From positions 1-64,000 of the forward strand of contig MCFE01000338.1 of assembly GCA_002104905.1 (NCBI GenBank): a stretch of DNA of 64,000 bases. The letters are read 5' to 3'. The notes beneath the pieces were generated by a model that was not told the origin of the DNA, ran no database searches, and saw only the letters and a list, made by a program, of their open reading frames with translations. The DNA comes from Basidiobolus meristosporus CBS 931.73. Taxonomy: Eukaryota > Fungi > Basidiobolomycota. How positions within the stretch are numbered: the stretch's first letter is position 1; each line of letters starts with the position of its first letter. A program made the translations under genes and the position numbers. Below, one piece after another: positions 45,525 through 55,267 of this stretch.

Positions 45525-47294
45525 TTAGCGGTTCAAAGTGGGAGTAGTGGCTTGGCGGCTAGGTAGACCGTTCACCCTTTGTTTTCTTGATTCATTTAAC
45601 TCAACTGTGTATTTCCAGATATGCTCGTTCAATTCGGTTTGGCCGAAAGCTTTGGGCAACAAGCCTTGCCAAGGTGAGAAGGAACAGCATGTCACCCTGA
45701 GACATTAACTCCTGCCCAGCAGCGTAAGCCTCTTGTCTTCTCTTGACGAAATCTTCTTGCAATACTTGGGAGATGTGCTCAGGTATGTTGTAGTCAGTAT
45801 GACGAAAAGCCATCAGGTAAGCCCGGAACTTCTCCAATAAACATTCATCCACAGCGAATGGAGTCGCTGAGGTTGGCTCTAGCGGGACTACGCAATCCAC
45901 AGGCAAGAATGTTTTGGCATTGGACAAAACGATCAATCCAATGTTCACTGGAAACTTCATCTCGTAATACGGGAAAACGTAGGTCAGCTCCTGCGTCTGT
46001 AAAATCGAGTGCAGCTCGTTAATGTTGCGTACACCGGAGTCATTGAGGTTTCCTTCGTCAAGAGCCGTTTCATCGATCAGCAAGGTAGTCCCATCGGGTA
46101 CCTGGAGCATTCCGGATTTGAGGAACTCATCACTCTTGGGGGTAAATGAATTGTTGTTGAGCAGGCTAAGGGCAAGTGGCAAAGTGTAAAACTTCGGGAG
46201 GACAGATGTCAACACGTTGGCCAGATTGGAGGTGAATGATTTGAGTGGAACGCCACTCGAAGTAGCACCCTCCGGTAACGTATCAGGAACTTTGCAAATA
46301 TTGAGCGACAGATTTCCTAGACAAAGTCCGCTCTTACGTGTGTGAACGTAAGACATGAGCTGAAGCAACAGGAACTCGGCGGCTAGTTGATCACCGCCAA
46401 GAGACGAGGCTAAATATTCAATCAATTTCGAGCGAATACTCTCCGCTTCTTGGCGAAGCTCAGCCACTCGGCTTTCTGGAACGGTCTTTTCGTCGATTTT
46501 GCGGTAGACAATGGTGTGTAGGCATGGAACGGAAGTAGCATCAACGGGACTTTCGTTGACACCAAAGTCGGCATTCATTGTGTTCGGTGTGGCGGTGGAA
46601 GGAGTGGGTGGGGTGTAAACGCCGATGAATTCTACGATTTCTCCCACCTTGGGGCCTTCCTCGTTTCCATAAACCTTGACCAAGACCGGAAGGTGATCTT
46701 CTTGTGGAAAGGGATATCTTGATCGGATATTTGCTGGTGCCTCGTAGGTGTTCCCTCAATAGAAATTGATTGAGTCATCTCGCGAAGCTCTTCAATGCTT
46801 TGATCCTCCGATTTGGAGTTGGTGAACATGGTCTCCGCCTGGTTCTTCGCCCAAGTAGTCTCCCCAGGAATGGTGACGCAGAAAAAGAGTTGCTTCTCGT
46901 CCACGCGGTTATTGGGAGAGTCAAAGTGACGAACGAACTGTTCCGTTTCTTCTTCCAGGTCGACATCGGTAAACCGATGACAGTGATATACTTTTCCTCC
47001 GTTGCTCTTATCCGTAGACTCAAGTACGTCGATAAAGCATTCTTGGCCAAGGCTAGTATCCTGCACCATTCCCCGGAAACGGACCAGGGTGTTTCTCGAG
47101 AGTTGAGTCGTCGTTTGATATGTTAAAGAAGGGATCTGGCGTACTTTCTCCTCCGTGTTGAAGATGGAGTTAAAATACTCGGTGAAGCCACTGCTAGACG
47201 AACTATACTGCCCGTTGCCCCACGCGGCTTCAAAAACCTTTTGTAGCACTTCGAGCGGATTGTTGATGAATTCAAGCGTTTCTGAGGAGACCAT
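45525..47294 (-). CDS. MCMBP: MCM complex-binding protein (MCMBP/Mcb1), with two apparent 1-nt indels
   Basis: LVRFRGMVQD, GGDQLAAEFLLLQL, FTPKS..LKSGMLQ, TTLLIDETALDEGNLNDSGVRN; frameshifts at 46753-46755 (CCC) and 45646-45648 (AAA) restore ...RYPFPQEDHLPVLVKVY and ...FGQTELNEHIW. Confidence 0.9.
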
Positions 47295-47548
47295 ATTGAA
47301 TGTGAGCGGCAAGTGAAAGAGGTTTAGAGTGTAGCTTGTTGAAATAGAAGAACAATAGTGTTGTTTTGATTCTCATTAATGAAAACAAAAACAAATTTTA
47401 AAATTTCCACCACAATTTGGCCTCTATTCACGAATGTGTTAATCACAATTATTCATAACATAAAAAGGGATTTGGTATAGTAGAATAAATCAATCACAAT
47501 ACATTTAATCATCAGATACAGCGTTGTCGATGCAAAGCAGGCAACAGG

Positions 47549-48256
47549 TTACTTTGCTTGAGATTTGAGGGCAACACATTTGTGCTTCTTGTATTCCCAG
47601 TCGATAGGGTCAACGTAATGTCCCTCCCTGAAGCAGTTCTCGCAGTACTTGTCGTTGTCGCACTCAGGGCATTCTACAGTAGCGTCTTCGTTGCATATAC
47701 AGCACCAGTTCTCTTCTTCTTTCAGGTCGGAAATCGACAGGGCTTTTGGTGGCGGGCCCAGGGCCGATTTATTATGTTCTTTTGAGGGAGACGAGACTGG
47801 TGGATTCTCTTTCAGTTCGTTTAAGCGTGTTTGTAGGTCACTATCGACCTTGAGCTCGATATGCTTGTATTTATTATTAAGAGATATTTCTTCGTTGACT
47901 TGGCGAATTAAGGTATCTTCCGCTAAAACATCTCCTGCCAAATCTTCCCTTCCCACAAAGGAGTCCACTACCTTATCAAGTTTGCCGGTATGAGCCGGAC
48001 TCAGATTTGGAACATCAGGTGAGATACCAAACTGCGTAGAGAAATCCTCCTCGCTTAACTCTAGTTCATTTAGTAATCTCTCTACCTCGTCCTGATCCAC
48101 CGCGGAATCCGGAACGGTGAAAGAACTATTCAAGACTACTGGCTTGTGTCCAAATACAGTGTTGAATCTTTTTTGAAGTTCCTCATCAGTTTCTTTGTAG
48201 TCGCCACCCTTCTTGAGACTTGCCAAACGAGCTTCTAGATCTTCGTCCTTCGACAT
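47549..48256 (-). CDS. ZFYVE19/ANCHR-like protein (C-terminal Cys/His zinc module, no FYVE domain seen)
   Basis: DLEARLASLK N-terminus, coiled-coil linker, WCCICNEDATVECPECDNDKYCENCFREGH. Confidence 0.75.
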   Translation of the reverse strand: MSKDEDLEARLASLKKGGDYKETDEELQKRFNTVFGHKPVVLNSSFTVPDSAVDQDEVERLLNELELSEEDFSTQFGISPDVPNLSPAHTGKLDKVVDSFVGREDLAGDVLAEDTLIRQVNEEISLNNKYKHIELKVDSDLQTRLNELKENPPVSSPSKEHNKSALGPPPKALSISDLKEEENWCCICNEDATVECPECDNDKYCENCFREGHYVDPIDWEYKKHKCVALKSQAK

Positions 48257-48459
48257 AAGCAAAGCAATTTGAGGCAGGAATGAAAGTGACTGGAATAATT
48301 TCTAGTGACGTTTAGTATCCGCGAGGGGGGATATATATGGCAAAGTTCACATGATTTAGCCCAAGTTCAGGATTCTCGATTTTTTCCTTATTTTCAAGAA
48401 ACATTTAAATCTAAGAATTCCGGATCAATCCTTTCTTTTGAAAGCACCAAGTTATACCA

Positions 48460-49801
48460 ATGTCACAAACAAAGAGGAAATCTGACGAGGTTGATTATCT
48501 CTTTGACGAGGAGGATGAGGAAGAGCTTGTGCCTATCGAAGAGGATCACTCGAACGTTGATTTGGATCTTAGTAGTTTAGATACCAAGATTTGGCTGGTC
48601 AAGGTGAGGGGGTTTCCCATTTTGCCTGAGAATGCACCCTCGGACAATCTCATTCGAACAATCACCTTTCCTTAGGTCCCAAAGTTTTTGGCGGAGAAGT
48701 GGGATAAGATAGAGGAGGATGGTTTAGACATGGGCAAAGTGAGAATATTTGAAGCGTAAGTTTTATTCCCGTCTTTGCGGCTCTATCAAGTTTAGTGTCT
48801 GTCACCTGCTACAACGATTTCTCTTTAATTTTATGTGCCAGTCCACCAACCACTACTGGACGCCAAAAACCACCCAAAGTAACCCACCCTATCCTGTACT
48901 ATGATATTGTGAGGGCATTCAAACTTACTTGTGACTTTTGTTAGATTTCTCTGTTGATTCCAAATACGCCAACAACAACCGATATTCCTAGAGAGTACAG
49001 CATTCAGATCACCAACCAGCAGGTGCAAAATATGTACGTCTTCAAGGAGGACGGAAAGGCTGGAGGTAAGGGAACTGAGTATATGCGGAATAGGTGTACC
49101 TAATACTCGACTAACCGCATGAGCAGTTGCCGATTCGTTGGCCGGCACTGTACACCATGAGTGCGGAGTGGTACCAGTCTACAACGACGAATACCGCCGT
49201 ATTATGAGAGGCCGTCTGATGCAAGCTGGCAAGCCACAACGCTCGGTCAAAGTGTTGTCCGACAATGACAAGACCGCTATGTTACCAGCAGCACGTGCCA
49301 TGTCTGAATTTCGCGGAAACAGCTTCGTTAGTATCCGGCATGGCTGGGAACCTTTGAAACACTTGATTTACCTCCAAATCTGTTTGTAGAAAAAAGCGAA
49401 GCCCAACCCAGACTCCAAATCCATTCGTATGCCTCGAAACGAGCTTATGGATCTTCTATTCGAAGGCTTCGAGAAATATCCATACTGGACGCTCAAAGGC
49501 ATCATCGAGTACACGAAGCAGCCAGTGGTTAGTGAGCCGGTTCCTGACTTTGCTGATATTGCTTTGCCACTAACTTGGTTGACGTCAGTCGTATCTCAAA
49601 GAAGTGCTCAACGAGATCTGTATTCTCAACAAGAAGGGACCATATACCTCCATGTATCAGCTGAAGCCTGAATTCAAGAAGGCAGGGAAAGAGAAGAAAG
49701 AAGCTGATCAGTCAGGCGACGGCAAGGGCGATGAGCCGAATATTGACGAGGAGTTGGAGATGGATGACGACGACGACGACTTGGAAATGGTGGAGGTGTA
49801 G
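48460..49801 (+). CDS. TFG2: TFIIF beta subunit (RAP30), multi-exon
   Basis: IWLVK|VPKFLAEKW, MYVFKE, GTVHHEC, RMPRNELMDLLF..FEKYPYW, YLKEVLNEI, YQLKPEF. Confidence 0.93.
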
Positions 49802-50019
49802 CCGGACCTAACGATTGCGGAATATTTTCTCTTTGATGCATCTCCCTTCACCAACGTGTAATAGCTGAATTAGGCTACTTTCAGCAATATTAAGGTATGG
49901 GAGACCTGCCTATTTGTGCGAGGATGGGATTATCTCGTTTATTAAGGATGCTACTTGGTCAAAGTCTAATAAAAGAAGAAATCTACATATGTTACATCGA
50001 ATCGACTCCAACCATTCCC

Positions 50020-51566
50020 CTACATCACGAGCAACGTGTCGTAGTCATGCTCGCTGACCACAACCTCAATTGATTCCCCTTCGTTTTGAAACTGTTTCTC
50101 AAGCCTTGGTTTGAGTACGTGGTGAAGGTAGCTGCGTTCAGTATTTGGGTCTTGACCTGGCCACCCGAAAAGTTAGACTCGAACTCCAAAAAAAGGAATA
50201 ACCCAAAGTCCCCGCTTACATAGAATTACGCTCGTGCCCCTGGACGCAGCCATCAGCATGTCTTGACGGGACATTTCTCGAGTAAAATACACATCTGCTT
50301 TTACCGCGGCGAACACTGAAGGGTCTAAATAAACAAGAGTGAGGAGACGATAAAAACCGACACATCAGAGAAACTCCGCTTTACTTGAGCCGGCGTAGAT
50401 CCCGATGGTACGAATGTTTTGTGAAAAGACGCCATCCTGTTGCGCATGCCTTTGCGATGGCGCCACTCGTACATGCTTTACGCTGAGATTGAGTTTGAGT
50501 CGAGCCACTATCATATCAAGGGAGGTGGGGTGGCTTAACGTCAATATTCGGACCACTCCGGAGCCGTCGAGTTCTACATGGAATTTAGCTTAGATTGTGC
50601 AATTAATGAAGCTGCGGAAAACCCTACCGGTGGCACCAGGACTGAGGGCCATCGATGTGATGATTCCGTCTCCTAAAGCGCGACCCATCCAGTCACACAC
50701 TACGAAGAGCATCCATTAAGTTCGCGCATTATGTTACACAATATTGCATCCGTCACTAACCACCACCGTCACAATTGTCCAGAGCTGAGTGCGGCGAGTA
50801 CACTGATATTCCATTGACAATACAGTTCATAATCAACGCCTGGCGCTCATCCGCCATATTCAACCTCTTCAATGGTTCGAACATCGGGGGTCGATAAGAT
50901 ATGATGACTCCGACTTTGGGATCAGCTACAGCGTCATCTAGGACTTGTTTCGTCAGGTCAGTTGTCAAAATCACACGAGTAGCAAACTGACGAGTCTTCG
51001 GCGGCTCTGGAGATTCTAGTCAGTATAATGTTGCTAAGTGACTATGTGGTCCACGAAGAAATACCTATCAATAGTCCCACATTGTCCCAAGTTGTATCAG
51101 CGAGGGAAAGTGGGGCTATTATTTCCATGTGTCTCTCTACGCGAGATATCAGAGATTCGGAATTCGTCGAATTCATCACCAGATCGGGTGGAAATGTGAA
51201 GTGCTCCATAGATATCAAGGGTGGTGTAGGGCAGGATACCTGTATTGCGGAGGTTGGGGTTCGCGGGGTGGATGTTTGCGCATTCTCCAGCATAGAGCCT
51301 TCCAACAAAAGGCTCTCGTGCTTTCTAGGCGCAGACTCGTCTTGTGGAGGCAGCGTTCCAGTGAAATACTGGCAATTCTCCAAATGCTTTCTACAGTTGG
51401 CCTTCTTGTTAAGGATCTTCTGCTGAAAGGCCACCGTCTCCCCCTTTCTCTCCGCACAATATTTACATACTGCAAAACGATCCTTCTTGTTCGCCATCTC
51501 GTCTAACACTATGAAATGCTCGGAGAGTTCATGTCGAGGTCTACCGCGCTTTCTTACTTCTTTCAT
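50020..51566 (-). CDS. BED-type zinc finger fused to a NIF3/DUF34 domain with substituted metal ligands, 6 exons
   Basis: Exon 1 (51566-51065) runs from RGRP..HF..CKYC..HLENC into APLSLADTTWDNVGLL; later exons give TTDLT, SYRPPMF, YSPHSALD, GVCDW, HVRVA, TIGIYAGS, TREMSRQ, VILCQDPNTERSYL. Confidence 0.85.
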
Positions 51567-51874
51567 TTTTTAATACTCTATGGCTCCTTTTTCCTTCCAC
51601 TAAACTCTTCCCAGTCATTAACGCCTTGTTGCCGTCGCGGGATATCAACACACCAGCAGGCTCAGATGGAAGAAATTTTTGCAAATGCCGTCTCCACGGC
51701 TCGGAAATTAAGTTGCTAATCGAATTACTCATCCCATTGCCAACATGTTTCCAAATAGACAATTCCACAATATTCAATACCGAAATCGCGAGTTTAAATG
51801 CTCCACGAGTACCTAAGTTACTGGTATTGGTAATCTTCAATCTTGTCCATTAGCTGGTTATAGCTACTGAAGCA

Positions 51875-52862
51875 ATGACTGAAAACGCTTTGGTCCCTTG
51901 GAGGTTCTGTAATCCGTACGCCAACCAGAAATACGATCCGGTCAGATCGTTTATTTTTAACGGGCATGAAAGTAAGCGGGGTGTATATGTTGGTGTGAAT
52001 GACCGCTTACTTACCTTCTTCCAGTTGTCATACAACAGAATCAAGACCAGAAGATAGACATCACCCAAAACACCGGGAATATTGTGTGGGATGGGGTAAG
52101 AGTACTGAAATCGCCGGCGTGGTATATTGGCTAACTCTGAGGCCCGAGCAGGCTTATATTCTGTCGAGATTCATACAGAAGCATGTGAAAGTAAAGGGGA
52201 AGAGATGCGTTGAGCTTGGTGCCGGGACAGGCTTGGTGGGCCTCGTAACTTGGTCACTTGGTTTGTTAGCTGGCGACAAGTAATGGGCAGCGCCACATCT
52301 ACTAACCGACCAATTTGACAAAAAGGCGGAAAAGTAGTCCTAACAGAGATACCAGACTTGATAGAGCTGACACAGAAAAACGTCGAGTTGAATACTCGCG
52401 CCCTAGTTGGTGACCTTTCGGAAGAAGACGTTGATGTCAAAGTGCTGAGTTGGTACAGTGGTTGAGCGAAGATTCTTGAATGAAAGTGGTATTCAATCTT
52501 TACTACAGGGGGGATGAAGCCCAGATAAACGACCTGTCGCCCCCGTACGAAGTGATTCTAGGTTCAGAGATATTGTATCTAAAAGACTTCCACAAAGATC
52601 TGTTAAAGACACTTTGTCGATTGTCTGATTCGAAGACGGAGATCTATATGGTATATAAGGAACGAGGCTTGGGTGAAGAGAAGTTCTTTATGCTGGCTAA
52701 GAGGTTCTCCTTCGATATCGAACAGGTGACTACTCCCCCGCTCGCAGTGATAGCATCATTTTCCTCATCTCAATATTCTAGGTACCCAACGAAATGATCG
52801 ACGAAGAATTCCAAAACCAGCCGTATCGAGTGTTCAAGATGAAAAAGCTGGATGGGCCTTAG
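51875..52862 (+). CDS. SAM-dependent protein-lysine methyltransferase (METTL21/family 16), multi-exon
   Basis: TGNIVWDG|AYILS, VELGAGTGLVG, VVLTE, EVILGSEILY, YKERG. Confidence 0.88.
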
Positions 52863-53003
52863 ATCAATGATCGTTTATACAGGTTATTTTTGTAAGAACA
52901 AAGCAGCCGAAGTGGATTGACAGGAGTCAAACTATAGAAATTAAATTTTTACAAAAAGGAGCTATTTGACGTTCTAGTGAGGTGGGAAATAAGCCAAAAT
53001 CTA

Positions 53004-53934
53004 ATCTAATCTCTCTTCTTGAATCTTTTCTTGAAATGCTTCCTGCCTCCAGCTTGTTTGGTTTCTTGAACCTCCAAGAACTTGCGCTTGAAGTAGCGTT
53101 TGGAATCGGTGTCAGCCATAAGCTCGCCCAGGATGGTTTCCTTGCGCTCTCTGCGCGTGAGACGAGCAGAGTAGAACTCTCCTGCACCCTCGATGATGGT
53201 TCCAACCTGGGAAAGACGAGAAAGGTTGGTACGGGTGCTGGTACATGGAAATCATTGCAAAGGTGAAGAGTACCTGGAAGTATTTTGGAAGTTCTTTGCT
53301 GTTATCCTTCTTGTAATGACGCTTAGGATCCAAAACATTTCTCAGCTTGATCAAAGTCAAATCCCTCTTCAACTCGTCGGTGATATCAGGTGCGGGCATG
53401 TCGAACCATTTCGCGCCAGCAGTCTTTTCCTTTTCCTAATGGCATCCAGATTGAGTCAAACTAACTCATTGTTGGGGAACTACTTCAAACGCAATCGGCA
53501 ATACCTTGGCAAGTTCTTTTCTGGTTGGCAACTCAGCCTTCAATAATTTCCGAGTTGGGAGCTTTTCGAGTGCCTTAGTTTGCTCAGCAGAAGCATCGTC
53601 ATCTTCCAAGGCCACGGCAGTATTCTTCATTTTAGAGACTCCCTTTTTTTTGGTCTCGATGTAAAGGTTCTCTTTGATTTTCAATCCAGAATCGAGCGAA
53701 GGGAACCTGTTATCTAGTTAAAAAATCTGCATATTTATCAGCTCTAGAAGCTACGCATAGATACCTCATGAGAGAAGGTTTCGGTTGTTTTCTGTAAGGT
53801 GGAGATGGTTTAGAATCTGGGTGATTTGCAGTAATTAGTGGTGTCGCAGCTTACTTGTTTTCCTGAGATTTCAAGTTCTGAGCAGCTGCATTGAGCAAAG
53901 CATCCAATTCAGTATCCTCGAACAGCGCAGCCAT
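53004..53934 (-). CDS. FCF2: rRNA-processing protein Fcf2, multi-exon; start inferred
   Basis: KTAGAKWFDMPAP, RDLTLIKLRNVLDPKRHYKK, PKYFQ|VGTIIEG..EFYS.RLTRRERK. Confidence 0.9.
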
Positions 53935-54392
53935 GTTAACAGAAATGTACTAAGGAAAGTAGCAGTGTCGACTGGAGCCCAACACTTTAAACTCTGGTTA
54001 AATTCGTTTTCATCAAGTACACCATCTCCCAATGTTAGGAATTTTCTTTTTTTTTCTTTCTGGTCATAGTGGTAGGATTCATTCATGACGATTCCAGAAT
54101 ATTTGATTCCCGTCAAAACCCCCATTAGATTTATTCTGTTGTTCCCGAATAATTGAGGACCAACACCACCACACGAATATACAGATACCAACTTAGGGTC
54201 AAACCAGAGGTAGGAGTAACCAAATTCTACCTAGTCATTGCCCACGTATTGTCGTGAAATGTCATCTAACATGAAGTGGTTACTGAACATGAACAACATC
54301 CGAGGAGAACATGACTTTAATAATGCGAATAAAGTTGGAACAAAGTGAAGTGTTTATGAGAAAAAGACGATTTTCAGTATCTAGCGATTTCC

Positions 54393-54869
54393 CTAGAACT
54401 AAACGAGAAACCAACAACGAGGTGTTAGGTGAGGTGAATATAGATATAGACCAACGCCAGAAAAGAGAACGTGTACTCACATCAGCCAAAGTGTCCTTGA
54501 TTTCTCTAGGGCCACGGACCTTGTTGGTGCGAAGGGATTTGAGATAGGCAAGTGCGAGGTGACGGCAGTTCTCGTAGTGGTTAACACCTTGAGTTCTATA
54601 ACATTCACGAAGTTTCTTTTTGACGATTCTCTCTTCCATTAATTTAACCCAGTCCTCACGAACCCTTTGGTTACGAGCAGCCAAGACAGCTAAAGACAGC
54701 AAAATCCAAGCGGAGGCAAAGCTTGGTTACATGGATGCACTTCTCGAACAGAGATAACTTAAGATATCTGGCTATTACCTTCGCGGTCATCTTTGTCGAC
54801 CTCCTCAATTTCAGGGACTTTGGGGTAGGTTTTGTGTTCGGGGTATTTCCAGCTCTCAGTGGCACTCAT
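54393..54869 (-). CDS. Complex I accessory subunit, NDUFB10/12-kDa-like, 3 exons
   Basis: VREDWVKLMEERIVKKKLRECYRTQGVNHYENCRHL. Confidence 0.85.
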
Positions 54870-55267
54870 GGTTTTTGTAAATCACTTTGATGGGGAGGTT
54901 AAAGATATAAATAAAAAAGAAAGCGACAGAGTTTCTTTCGTGGTTGAGAAATAATTACTGGGCTCACCTTTTGAAAGCTCTCGCCAATTTTCCACCAAGA
55001 AGGGTATTTCATCTGGCTCTCAATTCGAGTAAAAGTTGGAGCCCCATAAGCTTCCCCATCGCAATATGCGGATCTGACTCACCCCATGACCTTGGGAGTT
55101 ATGCAAGAAATAATCCCACTTCGTCTATCGGTACATAAACATATTCAGGATAGATTGAAATCCAAGTCACGTTCTTTTGTTTCTTTTTTTCTCTCAAGAT
55201 TTTGGGTGTGAAGTATCTGGCTTTCGGTGTACAGTCAATCCCTCTCTATTTTTTGGAAACTCTCACC

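Follow-up and report, generated by a model that had tools for sequence, protein, structure and literature searches.

Members of the NIF3/DUF34 family, which is among the most widespread protein families without a defined function, have been proposed to act as metal chaperones, transcriptional co-regulators or DNA-binding proteins (PMC8469502). NIF3 is reported to bind yeast Ngg1/Ada3, and NIF3L1 to undergo nuclear translocation with Trip15/CSN2 as a co-repressor; archaeal and bacterial homologues are reported to bind single-stranded or double-stranded DNA in vitro, and a role as metal chaperone or insertase has been proposed, with no catalytic activity established (PMC8469502). Fusions of NIF3L1 with a THAP-type zinc finger (Trichoplusia ni XP_026742495.1) and of NIF3 with RING have been catalogued, in tables that list neither BED-type fusions nor any Basidiobolus protein (Reed et al. 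2021, PMC8469502). Here we describe a gene in a 64,000-nucleotide stretch of Basidiobolus meristosporus CBS 931.73 (contig MCFE01000338.1, positions 1 to 64,000; hereafter the window) that joins a BED-like zinc finger to a NIF3 domain with an altered metal pocket. It is a real, undescribed variant of NIF3, so far restricted to one genus. With moderate confidence, we read it as a genus-level version of NIF3 that was duplicated, tagged with a finger and altered in its metal pocket, and that serves as a scaffold directed to DNA or to the nucleus.

The fused gene and its conservation

The gene has six exons on the minus strand (51566–50020), and its spliced product is a protein of 416 amino acids with a frame that is open from the ATG at 51566 to the stop. 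Exon 1 consists of 167 codons in an uninterrupted frame that goes from MKEVRKRGRPRH via HF..CKYC..HLENC and a region rich in P/S/T on to the N-terminus of NIF3, IAPLSLADTTWDNVGLL. Because exon 1 is a single open frame, the fusion is independent of splice prediction. An in-frame TAA lies two codons 5' of the ATG at 51566, and the five introns are all GT..AG, of phase 1 and 54–63 nt in length. The first-pass annotation of this DNA had described one uninterrupted exon that leads from the basic motif and finger via a linker into NIF3, with five further exons spliced in frame, and this arrangement is reproduced from the sequence. Its placement of the Arg codon of YRPP (50891–50893), the Asp codon of QDPNTE (50149–50151) and an internal ATG (51174–51176) is also correct on direct reading.

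50020..51566, minus strand: entire coding region of the fused gene, from the spliced translation and orthology to B. ranarum KAK9721275.1; stop codon at 50020–50022
51566–51065, 51006–50761, 50699–50628, 50573–50385, 50324–50220 and 50156–50020, minus strand: exons 1–6
51007–51064, 50700–50760, 50574–50627, 50325–50384 and 50157–50219, minus strand: introns, all inside the NIF3 part
51357..51566, minus strand: BED-like C2HC finger, residues 1–70, from ∼50 sequence relatives, hAT-type partner domains, the ESM Atlas and an AlphaFold2 (AF2) model
51159..51356, minus strand: disordered P/S/T-rich linker, residues 71–136 (∼65 residues), from the orthologue model, where the predicted local distance difference test score (pLDDT) is <50 at residues 64–132
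50023..51158, minus strand: NIF3/DUF34 domain, residues 137–416, from Pfam PF01784 and the structure model
51174..51176, minus strand: internal ATG (Met131), the start of the public model ORX91172.1

The public B. meristosporus model of this gene (ORX91172.1, P0002), named 'NGG1p interacting factor 3', is 283 amino acids long, lacks the finger and the linker, and matches query residues 131–167 at 100%. Whole-protein analyses were run on the B. ranarum orthologue (P0174) and on this partial public model. The intron-3 donor is ambiguous (50574–50636): GTAGGG at 50627 gives 416 amino acids, and GTGCCA 9 nt upstream, as in the public model, gives 413. The ambiguity sits in a variable surface loop, the length of which differs in B. 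ranarum too.

A search for the same fusion in relatives found it in B. ranarum, where gene K7432_003540 has two annotated isoforms. The 416-amino acid isoform (KAK9721275.1, P0174) is the full fused orthologue and is 78% identical to the window protein. The 354-amino acid isoform (KAK9721276.1, P0001) arises by retention of intron 4 (L001:5182–5252), ends within that intron and is without the C-terminal third of NIF3; an annotated retention isoform of this kind suggests that the annotation was informed by transcripts. Both isoforms begin at the finger ATG, and the introns of the fused gene lie at the same codons in the two species. The B. ranarum locus (L001) is colinear with window positions 46369–55022 (∼9 kb) across NDUFB10, Fcf2, Methyltransf_16, the fused NIF3, TFIIF-beta, an ANCHR-like B-box gene and MCM_bind. 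The immediate neighbors of the fused gene in the window are the divergent Methyltransf_16 gene (plus strand, from ∼51999) and the convergent TFIIF-beta gene, which ends at 49801.

Silent sites are saturated between the two species (proportion of synonymous differences, pS, ∼0.8), and the GC content at third codon positions of the fused gene is 0.54 in B. meristosporus versus 0.32 in B. ranarum. Because of this saturation, we compared differences by codon position instead of computing an exact ratio of nonsynonymous (dN) to synonymous (dS) substitution rates. At codon positions 1/2/3, the finger differs at 7/7/60% (amino acid identity 90%, dN 0.07), the linker at 19/8/69% (73%, dN 0.15) and the NIF3 part at 19/10/57% (76%, dN 0.145). 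At the DNA level, identity between the species is 62–75% in exons, 39–63% in introns and 40–48% in the flanks, and conservation starts exactly at the ATG at 51566. In both species, the frame from finger to NIF3 is free of stops. Met131, the public start, is replaced by Leu in B. ranarum, and the start Met of canonical NIF3 is replaced by Glu in both fused copies. The codon-position pattern, the open frame, the exact onset at the ATG and the unconserved internal Met together argue that the first 136 residues are coding sequence held under constraint that runs on into NIF3 without a break, and the sequence comparison indicates that all three parts, finger, linker and NIF3, are translated and evolve under purifying selection. 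The view that the gene has not decayed is thereby borne out. The suggestion in the first-pass annotation that the ATG at 51176 could also yield an unfused isoform loses support, since B. ranarum has Leu in place of this Met and both species have Glu where the ancestral start Met stood; judged from these substitutions, any unfused isoform made in B. meristosporus would not be a conserved feature.

Since the 130 conserved codons of finger and linker are absent from the public gene model, other N-terminal fusions of this kind may be systematically left out of, or under-counted in, public protein sets for the B. meristosporus genome. A metagenome scan for further orthologues of the fused gene matched 187 patterns and confirmed no relative.

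The NIF3 domain and its canonical paralogue

Exon 2 alone matches the Pfam NIF3/DUF34 family with 54.7 bits against a cut-off of 23.4 (E-value 1.5e-14), and weaker matches occur in exons 4 and 5; PF01784 is also found in the shorter B. ranarum isoform (107.4 bits) and in the public B. meristosporus model. In the AF2 model of the B. ranarum orthologue, which was built as a monomer, pLDDT is >90 over residues 140–416. When this model was compared by Foldseek with the NIF3 structures 2fyw, 1nmo, 3wse and 2yyb, which include YbgI and HcgD, E-values ranged from 6e-20 to 2e-12 and template modeling (TM) scores by target from 0.81 to 0.87. The modeled two-lobed alpha/beta fold of NIF3 is thus intact, in agreement with the earlier statement that the remainder of the fold is conserved.

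A second NIF3 was looked for in B. meristosporus and was found on contig MCFE01000063.1: it encodes a protein of 281 amino acids (P0056) that is fully canonical. Its five introns match those of the fused copy both in the codon that they interrupt and in phase, so the fused copy arose by duplication at the DNA level rather than through retroposition. A maximum-likelihood tree of 28 NIF3 proteins groups the two fused copies together (support 100/100), with the canonical Basidiobolus copy as the sister of this group (98/98). The fused clade has a stem of 0.75 substitutions per site versus 0.14 for the canonical copy, a difference of about five-fold, and the terminal branches of the fused copies measure 0.14–0.15. 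These branch lengths indicate a burst of change after duplication, followed by constraint.

Changes in the metal pocket

Bacterial NIF3 structures have seven conserved pocket residues, comprising five His, one Glu and one Asp (Reed et al. 2021, PMC8469502). The tier-1 motifs of the family are a dual-His motif, (H/Y)H, which is Tyr-His in eukaryotes; HxxxD; Dxxx(T/S)G(E/D); a eukaryote-specific (M/L)xHH; and a C-terminal HxxxE, after which eukaryotes have Arg (PMC8469502). We compared the pocket in an alignment of 84 NIF3 homologues from bacteria to animals, using 12 pocket columns and scoring conservation over the 81 other homologues. The signature YHHDDGEHHHER is present at these columns in 77 of the 84. 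Here the window copy has YRHDDRERQDER and the B. ranarum copy YRHDDRDRQDER, i.e. YRHDDR(E/D)RQDER, a pattern that is found in no other homologue in the alignment.

50891..50893, minus strand: Arg206 in place of the His of the eukaryotic Y-H motif (YHPP to YRPP); the column is His in 99% of the 81 other homologues
50777..50791, minus strand: retained HSALD motif (His240, Asp244); neither column varies, the fused copies included
50263..50283, minus strand: TREMSRQ in place of TGEMSHH (Gly352Arg, His356Arg, His357Gln), from the alignment; REMSRQ occupies 50263–50280
50137..50154, minus strand: QDPNTE in place of EHxNTE (His374Asp of HxxxE; Glu378 and Arg379 kept), from the alignment; Asp codon at 50149–50151

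The fused copies have lost four of the five conserved pocket histidines, which are replaced by Arg, Arg, Gln and Asp, and two pocket glycines, which are replaced by Arg and Asn. HxxxD is the only tier-1 motif that is intact, and the others read YR, DxxxTRE, MSRQ and DxxxER. The Gly to Asn change lies in CAGSG, where both fused copies also share Cys to Tyr; further shared changes are Gly to Ser in TERG, Pro to Ser/Thr near the C-terminus, and Glu191 to Asp. At the 61 columns with ≥90% conservation across the 81 other homologues, the window copy deviates 14 times and the B. ranarum fused copy 16 times, versus two deviations in the canonical paralogue; the median across homologues is 1 and the 95th percentile is 6. 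By this comparison, the substitutions in the fused copy are far beyond chance.

The YRPP, REMSRQ and QDPNTE substitutions reported in the first-pass annotation are all reproduced, and they are specific to the fused copies. We considered whether they might be the norm for NIF3 in this lineage. They are not: the canonical paralogue in the same genome deviates at two of the 61 columns versus 14, so the histidine losses belong to the fused copy. From these substitutions, we conclude that the canonical dinuclear site is very probably gone. The label 'pseudo-enzyme' had also been proposed, and the residue loss on which it was based is seen in the alignment, but the term is ill-defined for NIF3 because no catalytic activity has been established for the family (PMC8469502).

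The NIF3 of Pneumocystis oryctolagi (P0102) reads AYRRCSDPVIF where the family reads YHPPIF; this looks like a mis-spliced public model and not a second case of His loss.

The N-terminal finger and linker

The first 70 residues contain the pattern Cys34-x2-Cys37-x23-His61-x3-Cys65 downstream of His17-Phe18, which fits the BED pattern C-x2-C...H-x3-5-(H/C); across 51 family members, these columns show little or no variation.

51465–51467, minus strand: Cys34, putative zinc ligand
51456–51458, minus strand: Cys37, putative zinc ligand
51384–51386, minus strand: His61, putative zinc ligand
51372–51374, minus strand: Cys65, putative zinc ligand
51534..51551, minus strand: basic KRGRPR motif, residues 6–11, an AT-hook-like core read from the sequence, with a predicted function

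A HMMER search with exon 1 returned ∼50 relatives of residues 5–77 with E-values from 3e-11 to 8e-4, and the module is N-terminal in almost all of them. The relatives include proteins from Glomeromycotina (Dentiscutata, Gigaspora and Racocetra) and oomycetes (Achlya and Lagenidium), and UniProt labels one of them 'BED-type domain protein' and another 'Transposase'. The family consensus is G-x-x-x-H-x-L-(T/S)-x-x-F ... C-x2-C ... H-L-x-x-C; Cys34 never varies, and His12, Cys37 and His61 hardly do. The conserved N-terminus of this family includes the element G-(R/K)-P-x-H. KRGRPR fits an AT-hook core, and its cluster of basic residues might serve as a signal for nuclear import.

Among 54 full-length finger relatives, DUF659 is present in five and the hAT dimerization domain (Dimer_Tnp_hAT) in one, at 5e-13; zf-BED falls just below threshold in three (20.1 versus 20.6 bits), and several carry the typical hAT motif that comes after BED fingers. 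The module is therefore found at the N-termini of hAT-transposase-like proteins, as expected from the origin in a hAT transposon that the first-pass annotation had suggested. When residues 1–75 of the B. ranarum orthologue were compared with the ESM Atlas, 'BED zinc finger' clusters were matched with feature scores of 0.93 and 0.91, and BED, ZBED1-like and DAYSLEEPER clusters were matched in structure with TM scores of 0.54–0.62. Of the feature matches that have a Pfam family, the ten best all belong to the same family or clan as the top BED zinc-finger cluster. The whole-protein AF2 model lacks finger homologues and gives an all-helical finger with pLDDT of 53–71, so we relied on a separate finger model built from the family alignment (pLDDT 74.6). 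Each of these lines of evidence is weak to moderate, but they agree: the signal, though faint, is consistently that of a divergent BED-type finger with hAT-transposase ancestry.

A tblastn and profile scan of the 64-kb window turned up neither another copy of the finger nor any hAT remnant, and a word search of public protein sets with finger residues 1–80 returned the B. ranarum orthologue as the only match. In the Atlas, a cluster of 704-amino acid proteins of the 'arsenite methyltransferase family' (65 members, 63 from Zoopagomycota) aligns structurally to the finger with a TM score of 0.63, and DUF3237 and TENA/THI-4 clusters from Ascomycota also align to it. Finger-tagged enzymes may be recurrent in fungi.

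Within the linker, a block of about 20 residues, CPTPPLISMEHFTFPPDLV (residues 110–128, 51183–51239), is almost identical in B. meristosporus and B. ranarum, and CPTPPLISMEHFTFPPDLV is a candidate short linear docking motif.

Proposed origin and role

An ancestor of B. meristosporus and B. ranarum duplicated NIF3 at the DNA level, with the five introns kept. One duplicate remained canonical; the other lost its start Met and gained a 5' exon-1 extension that encodes the BED-like C2HC finger, KRGRPR and the disordered linker. Along the same long branch, four of the five pocket histidines and two pocket glycines were replaced with no harm to the fold, and the whole fusion has since been held by purifying selection. 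The canonical dinuclear metal site is probably lost or diminished, its pocket occupied by Arg side chains. The product would be a non-canonical NIF3 scaffold that is brought to the nucleus or to DNA by the finger and the basic motif. Like NIF3 proteins in general, which form a toroidal hexamer (dimer of trimers), it may be oligomeric, and it could perhaps also assemble with the canonical paralogue. That the fused protein binds DNA, no longer binds metal and has a regulatory role is predicted from the sequence.

Several observations weigh against this reading. The pocket retains His240, Asp244, Asp347, Glu353, Glu378 and Arg379 and gains Asp374, a possible metal ligand, so a single-metal or altered site is possible; 'dismantled', the earlier description of the metal site, holds for four of the five histidines but goes too far for the residues that remain. 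The fused copy could accordingly be a metal-binding NIF3 with a remodeled site, e.g. one metal on His240, Asp244, Asp374 and Glu378, in which the finger merely relocates a normal activity and the product is a targeted enzyme or chaperone. The retention of half of the 12 pocket positions is consistent with such a site, as are the change of His374 to Asp, a good metal ligand, the intact fold with pLDDT >90, and purifying selection on the NIF3 part that equals that on neighboring genes. However, four of the five histidines are gone, and two Arg and a Gly to Arg change occupy motifs that are otherwise invariant from bacteria to animals. These changes also coincide with the ∼five-fold longer branch while a canonical copy was kept, which is the usual pattern of functional change. 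We regard a remodeled, metal-binding site as unlikely, though as an explanation to be taken seriously.

Further difficulties concern the finger. Pfam zf-BED (PF02892) gives no match to exon 1 at E ≤ 1, so the designation 'BED-like' is based on the other evidence described above. Searches of PDB sequences with exon 1 and with the finger-family profile returned chance matches such as vimentin and E6 and no solved BED domain. Foldseek with the finger model found nothing significant, and the BED domains of ZBED3 and ZBED1 ranked 7 and 15 with E-values of 7–9. In an exhaustive VIA search of 48,161 chains, 15 had Z ≥ 2, including ZBED1 (Z 2.3, with 56 residues aligned), ZBED2 (Z 2.1) and other C2H2-like fingers, but the ZBED1 and ZBED2 values of 2.1–2.3 are not significant. 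BED fingers can also mediate protein contacts, and ZBED3, one of the Foldseek matches, occurs in a protein complex. The description of this region in the first-pass annotation as a BED-like zinc finger is therefore backed by the ligand pattern, the hAT-like relatives and the Atlas clusters, and weakly by the structure searches, but not by Pfam. One alternative is that the N-terminus is a zinc-ribbon or C2HC module for protein or RNA contacts and that the protein is not tethered to DNA. The missing zf-BED and structural matches would be expected of such a module, and the other weak VIA matches are RNA-associated C2H2-like fingers (SERRATE/ARS2, TUT1/TUT4 and spliceosomal proteins). Its relatives, however, form the N-terminal part of hAT-transposase-like proteins, the place in which BED fingers bind the DNA of transposons, and the UniProt labels, the ten of ten Atlas family or clan matches and the DAYSLEEPER-type ZBED clusters among the structure matches all favor a BED finger; we consider a finger without a DNA role improbable.

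The remaining points concern the gene and the family. A single fused transcript is deduced from conservation and from the B. ranarum annotation, and the public model, which is derived from the Joint Genome Institute (JGI), begins at the internal ATG. It is nevertheless very improbable that the main product is an unfused 283-amino acid NIF3 from the ATG at 51176, as ORX91172.1 would have it, with the finger open reading frame as a 5' leader or minor isoform: the 130 upstream codons have a translated, constrained pattern and form the best-conserved part of the gene (90% amino acid identity with silent sites saturated), no stop separates finger from NIF3 in either species, conservation begins exactly at the ATG at 51566, and Met131 is Leu in B. 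ranarum, where both annotated isoforms begin at the finger ATG. A canonical B. ranarum NIF3 was not seen among the matches listed, which says little because the B. ranarum assembly is fragmented. Finally, no biochemical function has been defined for NIF3 itself (PMC8469502).

On our preferred reading of a finger-tagged scaffold with an altered pocket, the fused and canonical pair in B. meristosporus permits a direct comparison of a NIF3 body without its metal site and with a possible action on DNA, and the fused copy provides a natural handle on an unsolved, universally conserved protein. A broader conjecture, which we consider doubtful, is that hAT-derived BED-like fingers serve in Basidiobolus as a general N-terminal tag that brings housekeeping proteins to DNA or chromatin, and that the tagged NIF3 is metal-free, binds DNA with up to six fingers per ring and recruits the canonical paralogue by mixed oligomerization. 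Besides NIF3, an arsenite-methyltransferase-like family would perhaps be a candidate for such tagging. If the conjecture is true, the fused copy would be the first natural case in which the scaffold role of NIF3 is uncoupled from its role with metal, and would tie NIF3 directly to DNA.

Comparison with known systems

A literature search found no paper that combines NIF3 with a BED zinc finger, or Basidiobolus with a zinc finger and hAT, and the fused B. ranarum protein is present in NCBI as a 'hypothetical protein' only. The remark in the first-pass annotation that no described protein with such an architecture is known needs qualification: no paper in the literature search and no entry in the fusion tables of PMC8469502 reports a BED–NIF3 protein, but the B. 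ranarum fusion is already in NCBI and THAP–NIF3 and RING–NIF3 fusions are catalogued. The Trichoplusia ni THAP–NIF3L1 protein resembles the fused Basidiobolus NIF3 in that a transposase-derived finger of DNA-binding type is joined to NIF3 in a eukaryote. It differs in that its finger is of the THAP type and its host is an insect, whereas the Basidiobolus finger is BED-like and hAT-related and its host is a fungus.

The domesticated hAT BED-finger proteins ZBED1/DREF, ZBED2, ZBED3 and plant DAYSLEEPER share with the fused protein a C-x2-C...H-x3-5-(H/C) finger after an aromatic residue, an origin at the N-terminus of hAT transposases and a weak structural likeness. Unlike in these proteins, only the finger has been kept in the fused NIF3, where it is joined to an unrelated host protein and falls below the Pfam zf-BED threshold.

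Canonical eukaryotic NIF3 proteins, represented by yeast Nif3, human NIF3L1 and here the B. meristosporus paralogue P0056, resemble the fused copy in their PF01784 domain and fold, and P0056 also shares its five intron positions and is 53–56% identical. WDNVGLL, SPHxxD and NTER are kept in both. In contrast to canonical NIF3, the fused copy has an additional 136-residue N-terminal finger and linker and a stem that is ∼five times longer, and it reads YR, TRE-MSRQ and QD-NTE where canonical NIF3 reads YH, TGE-MSHH and EH-NTE.

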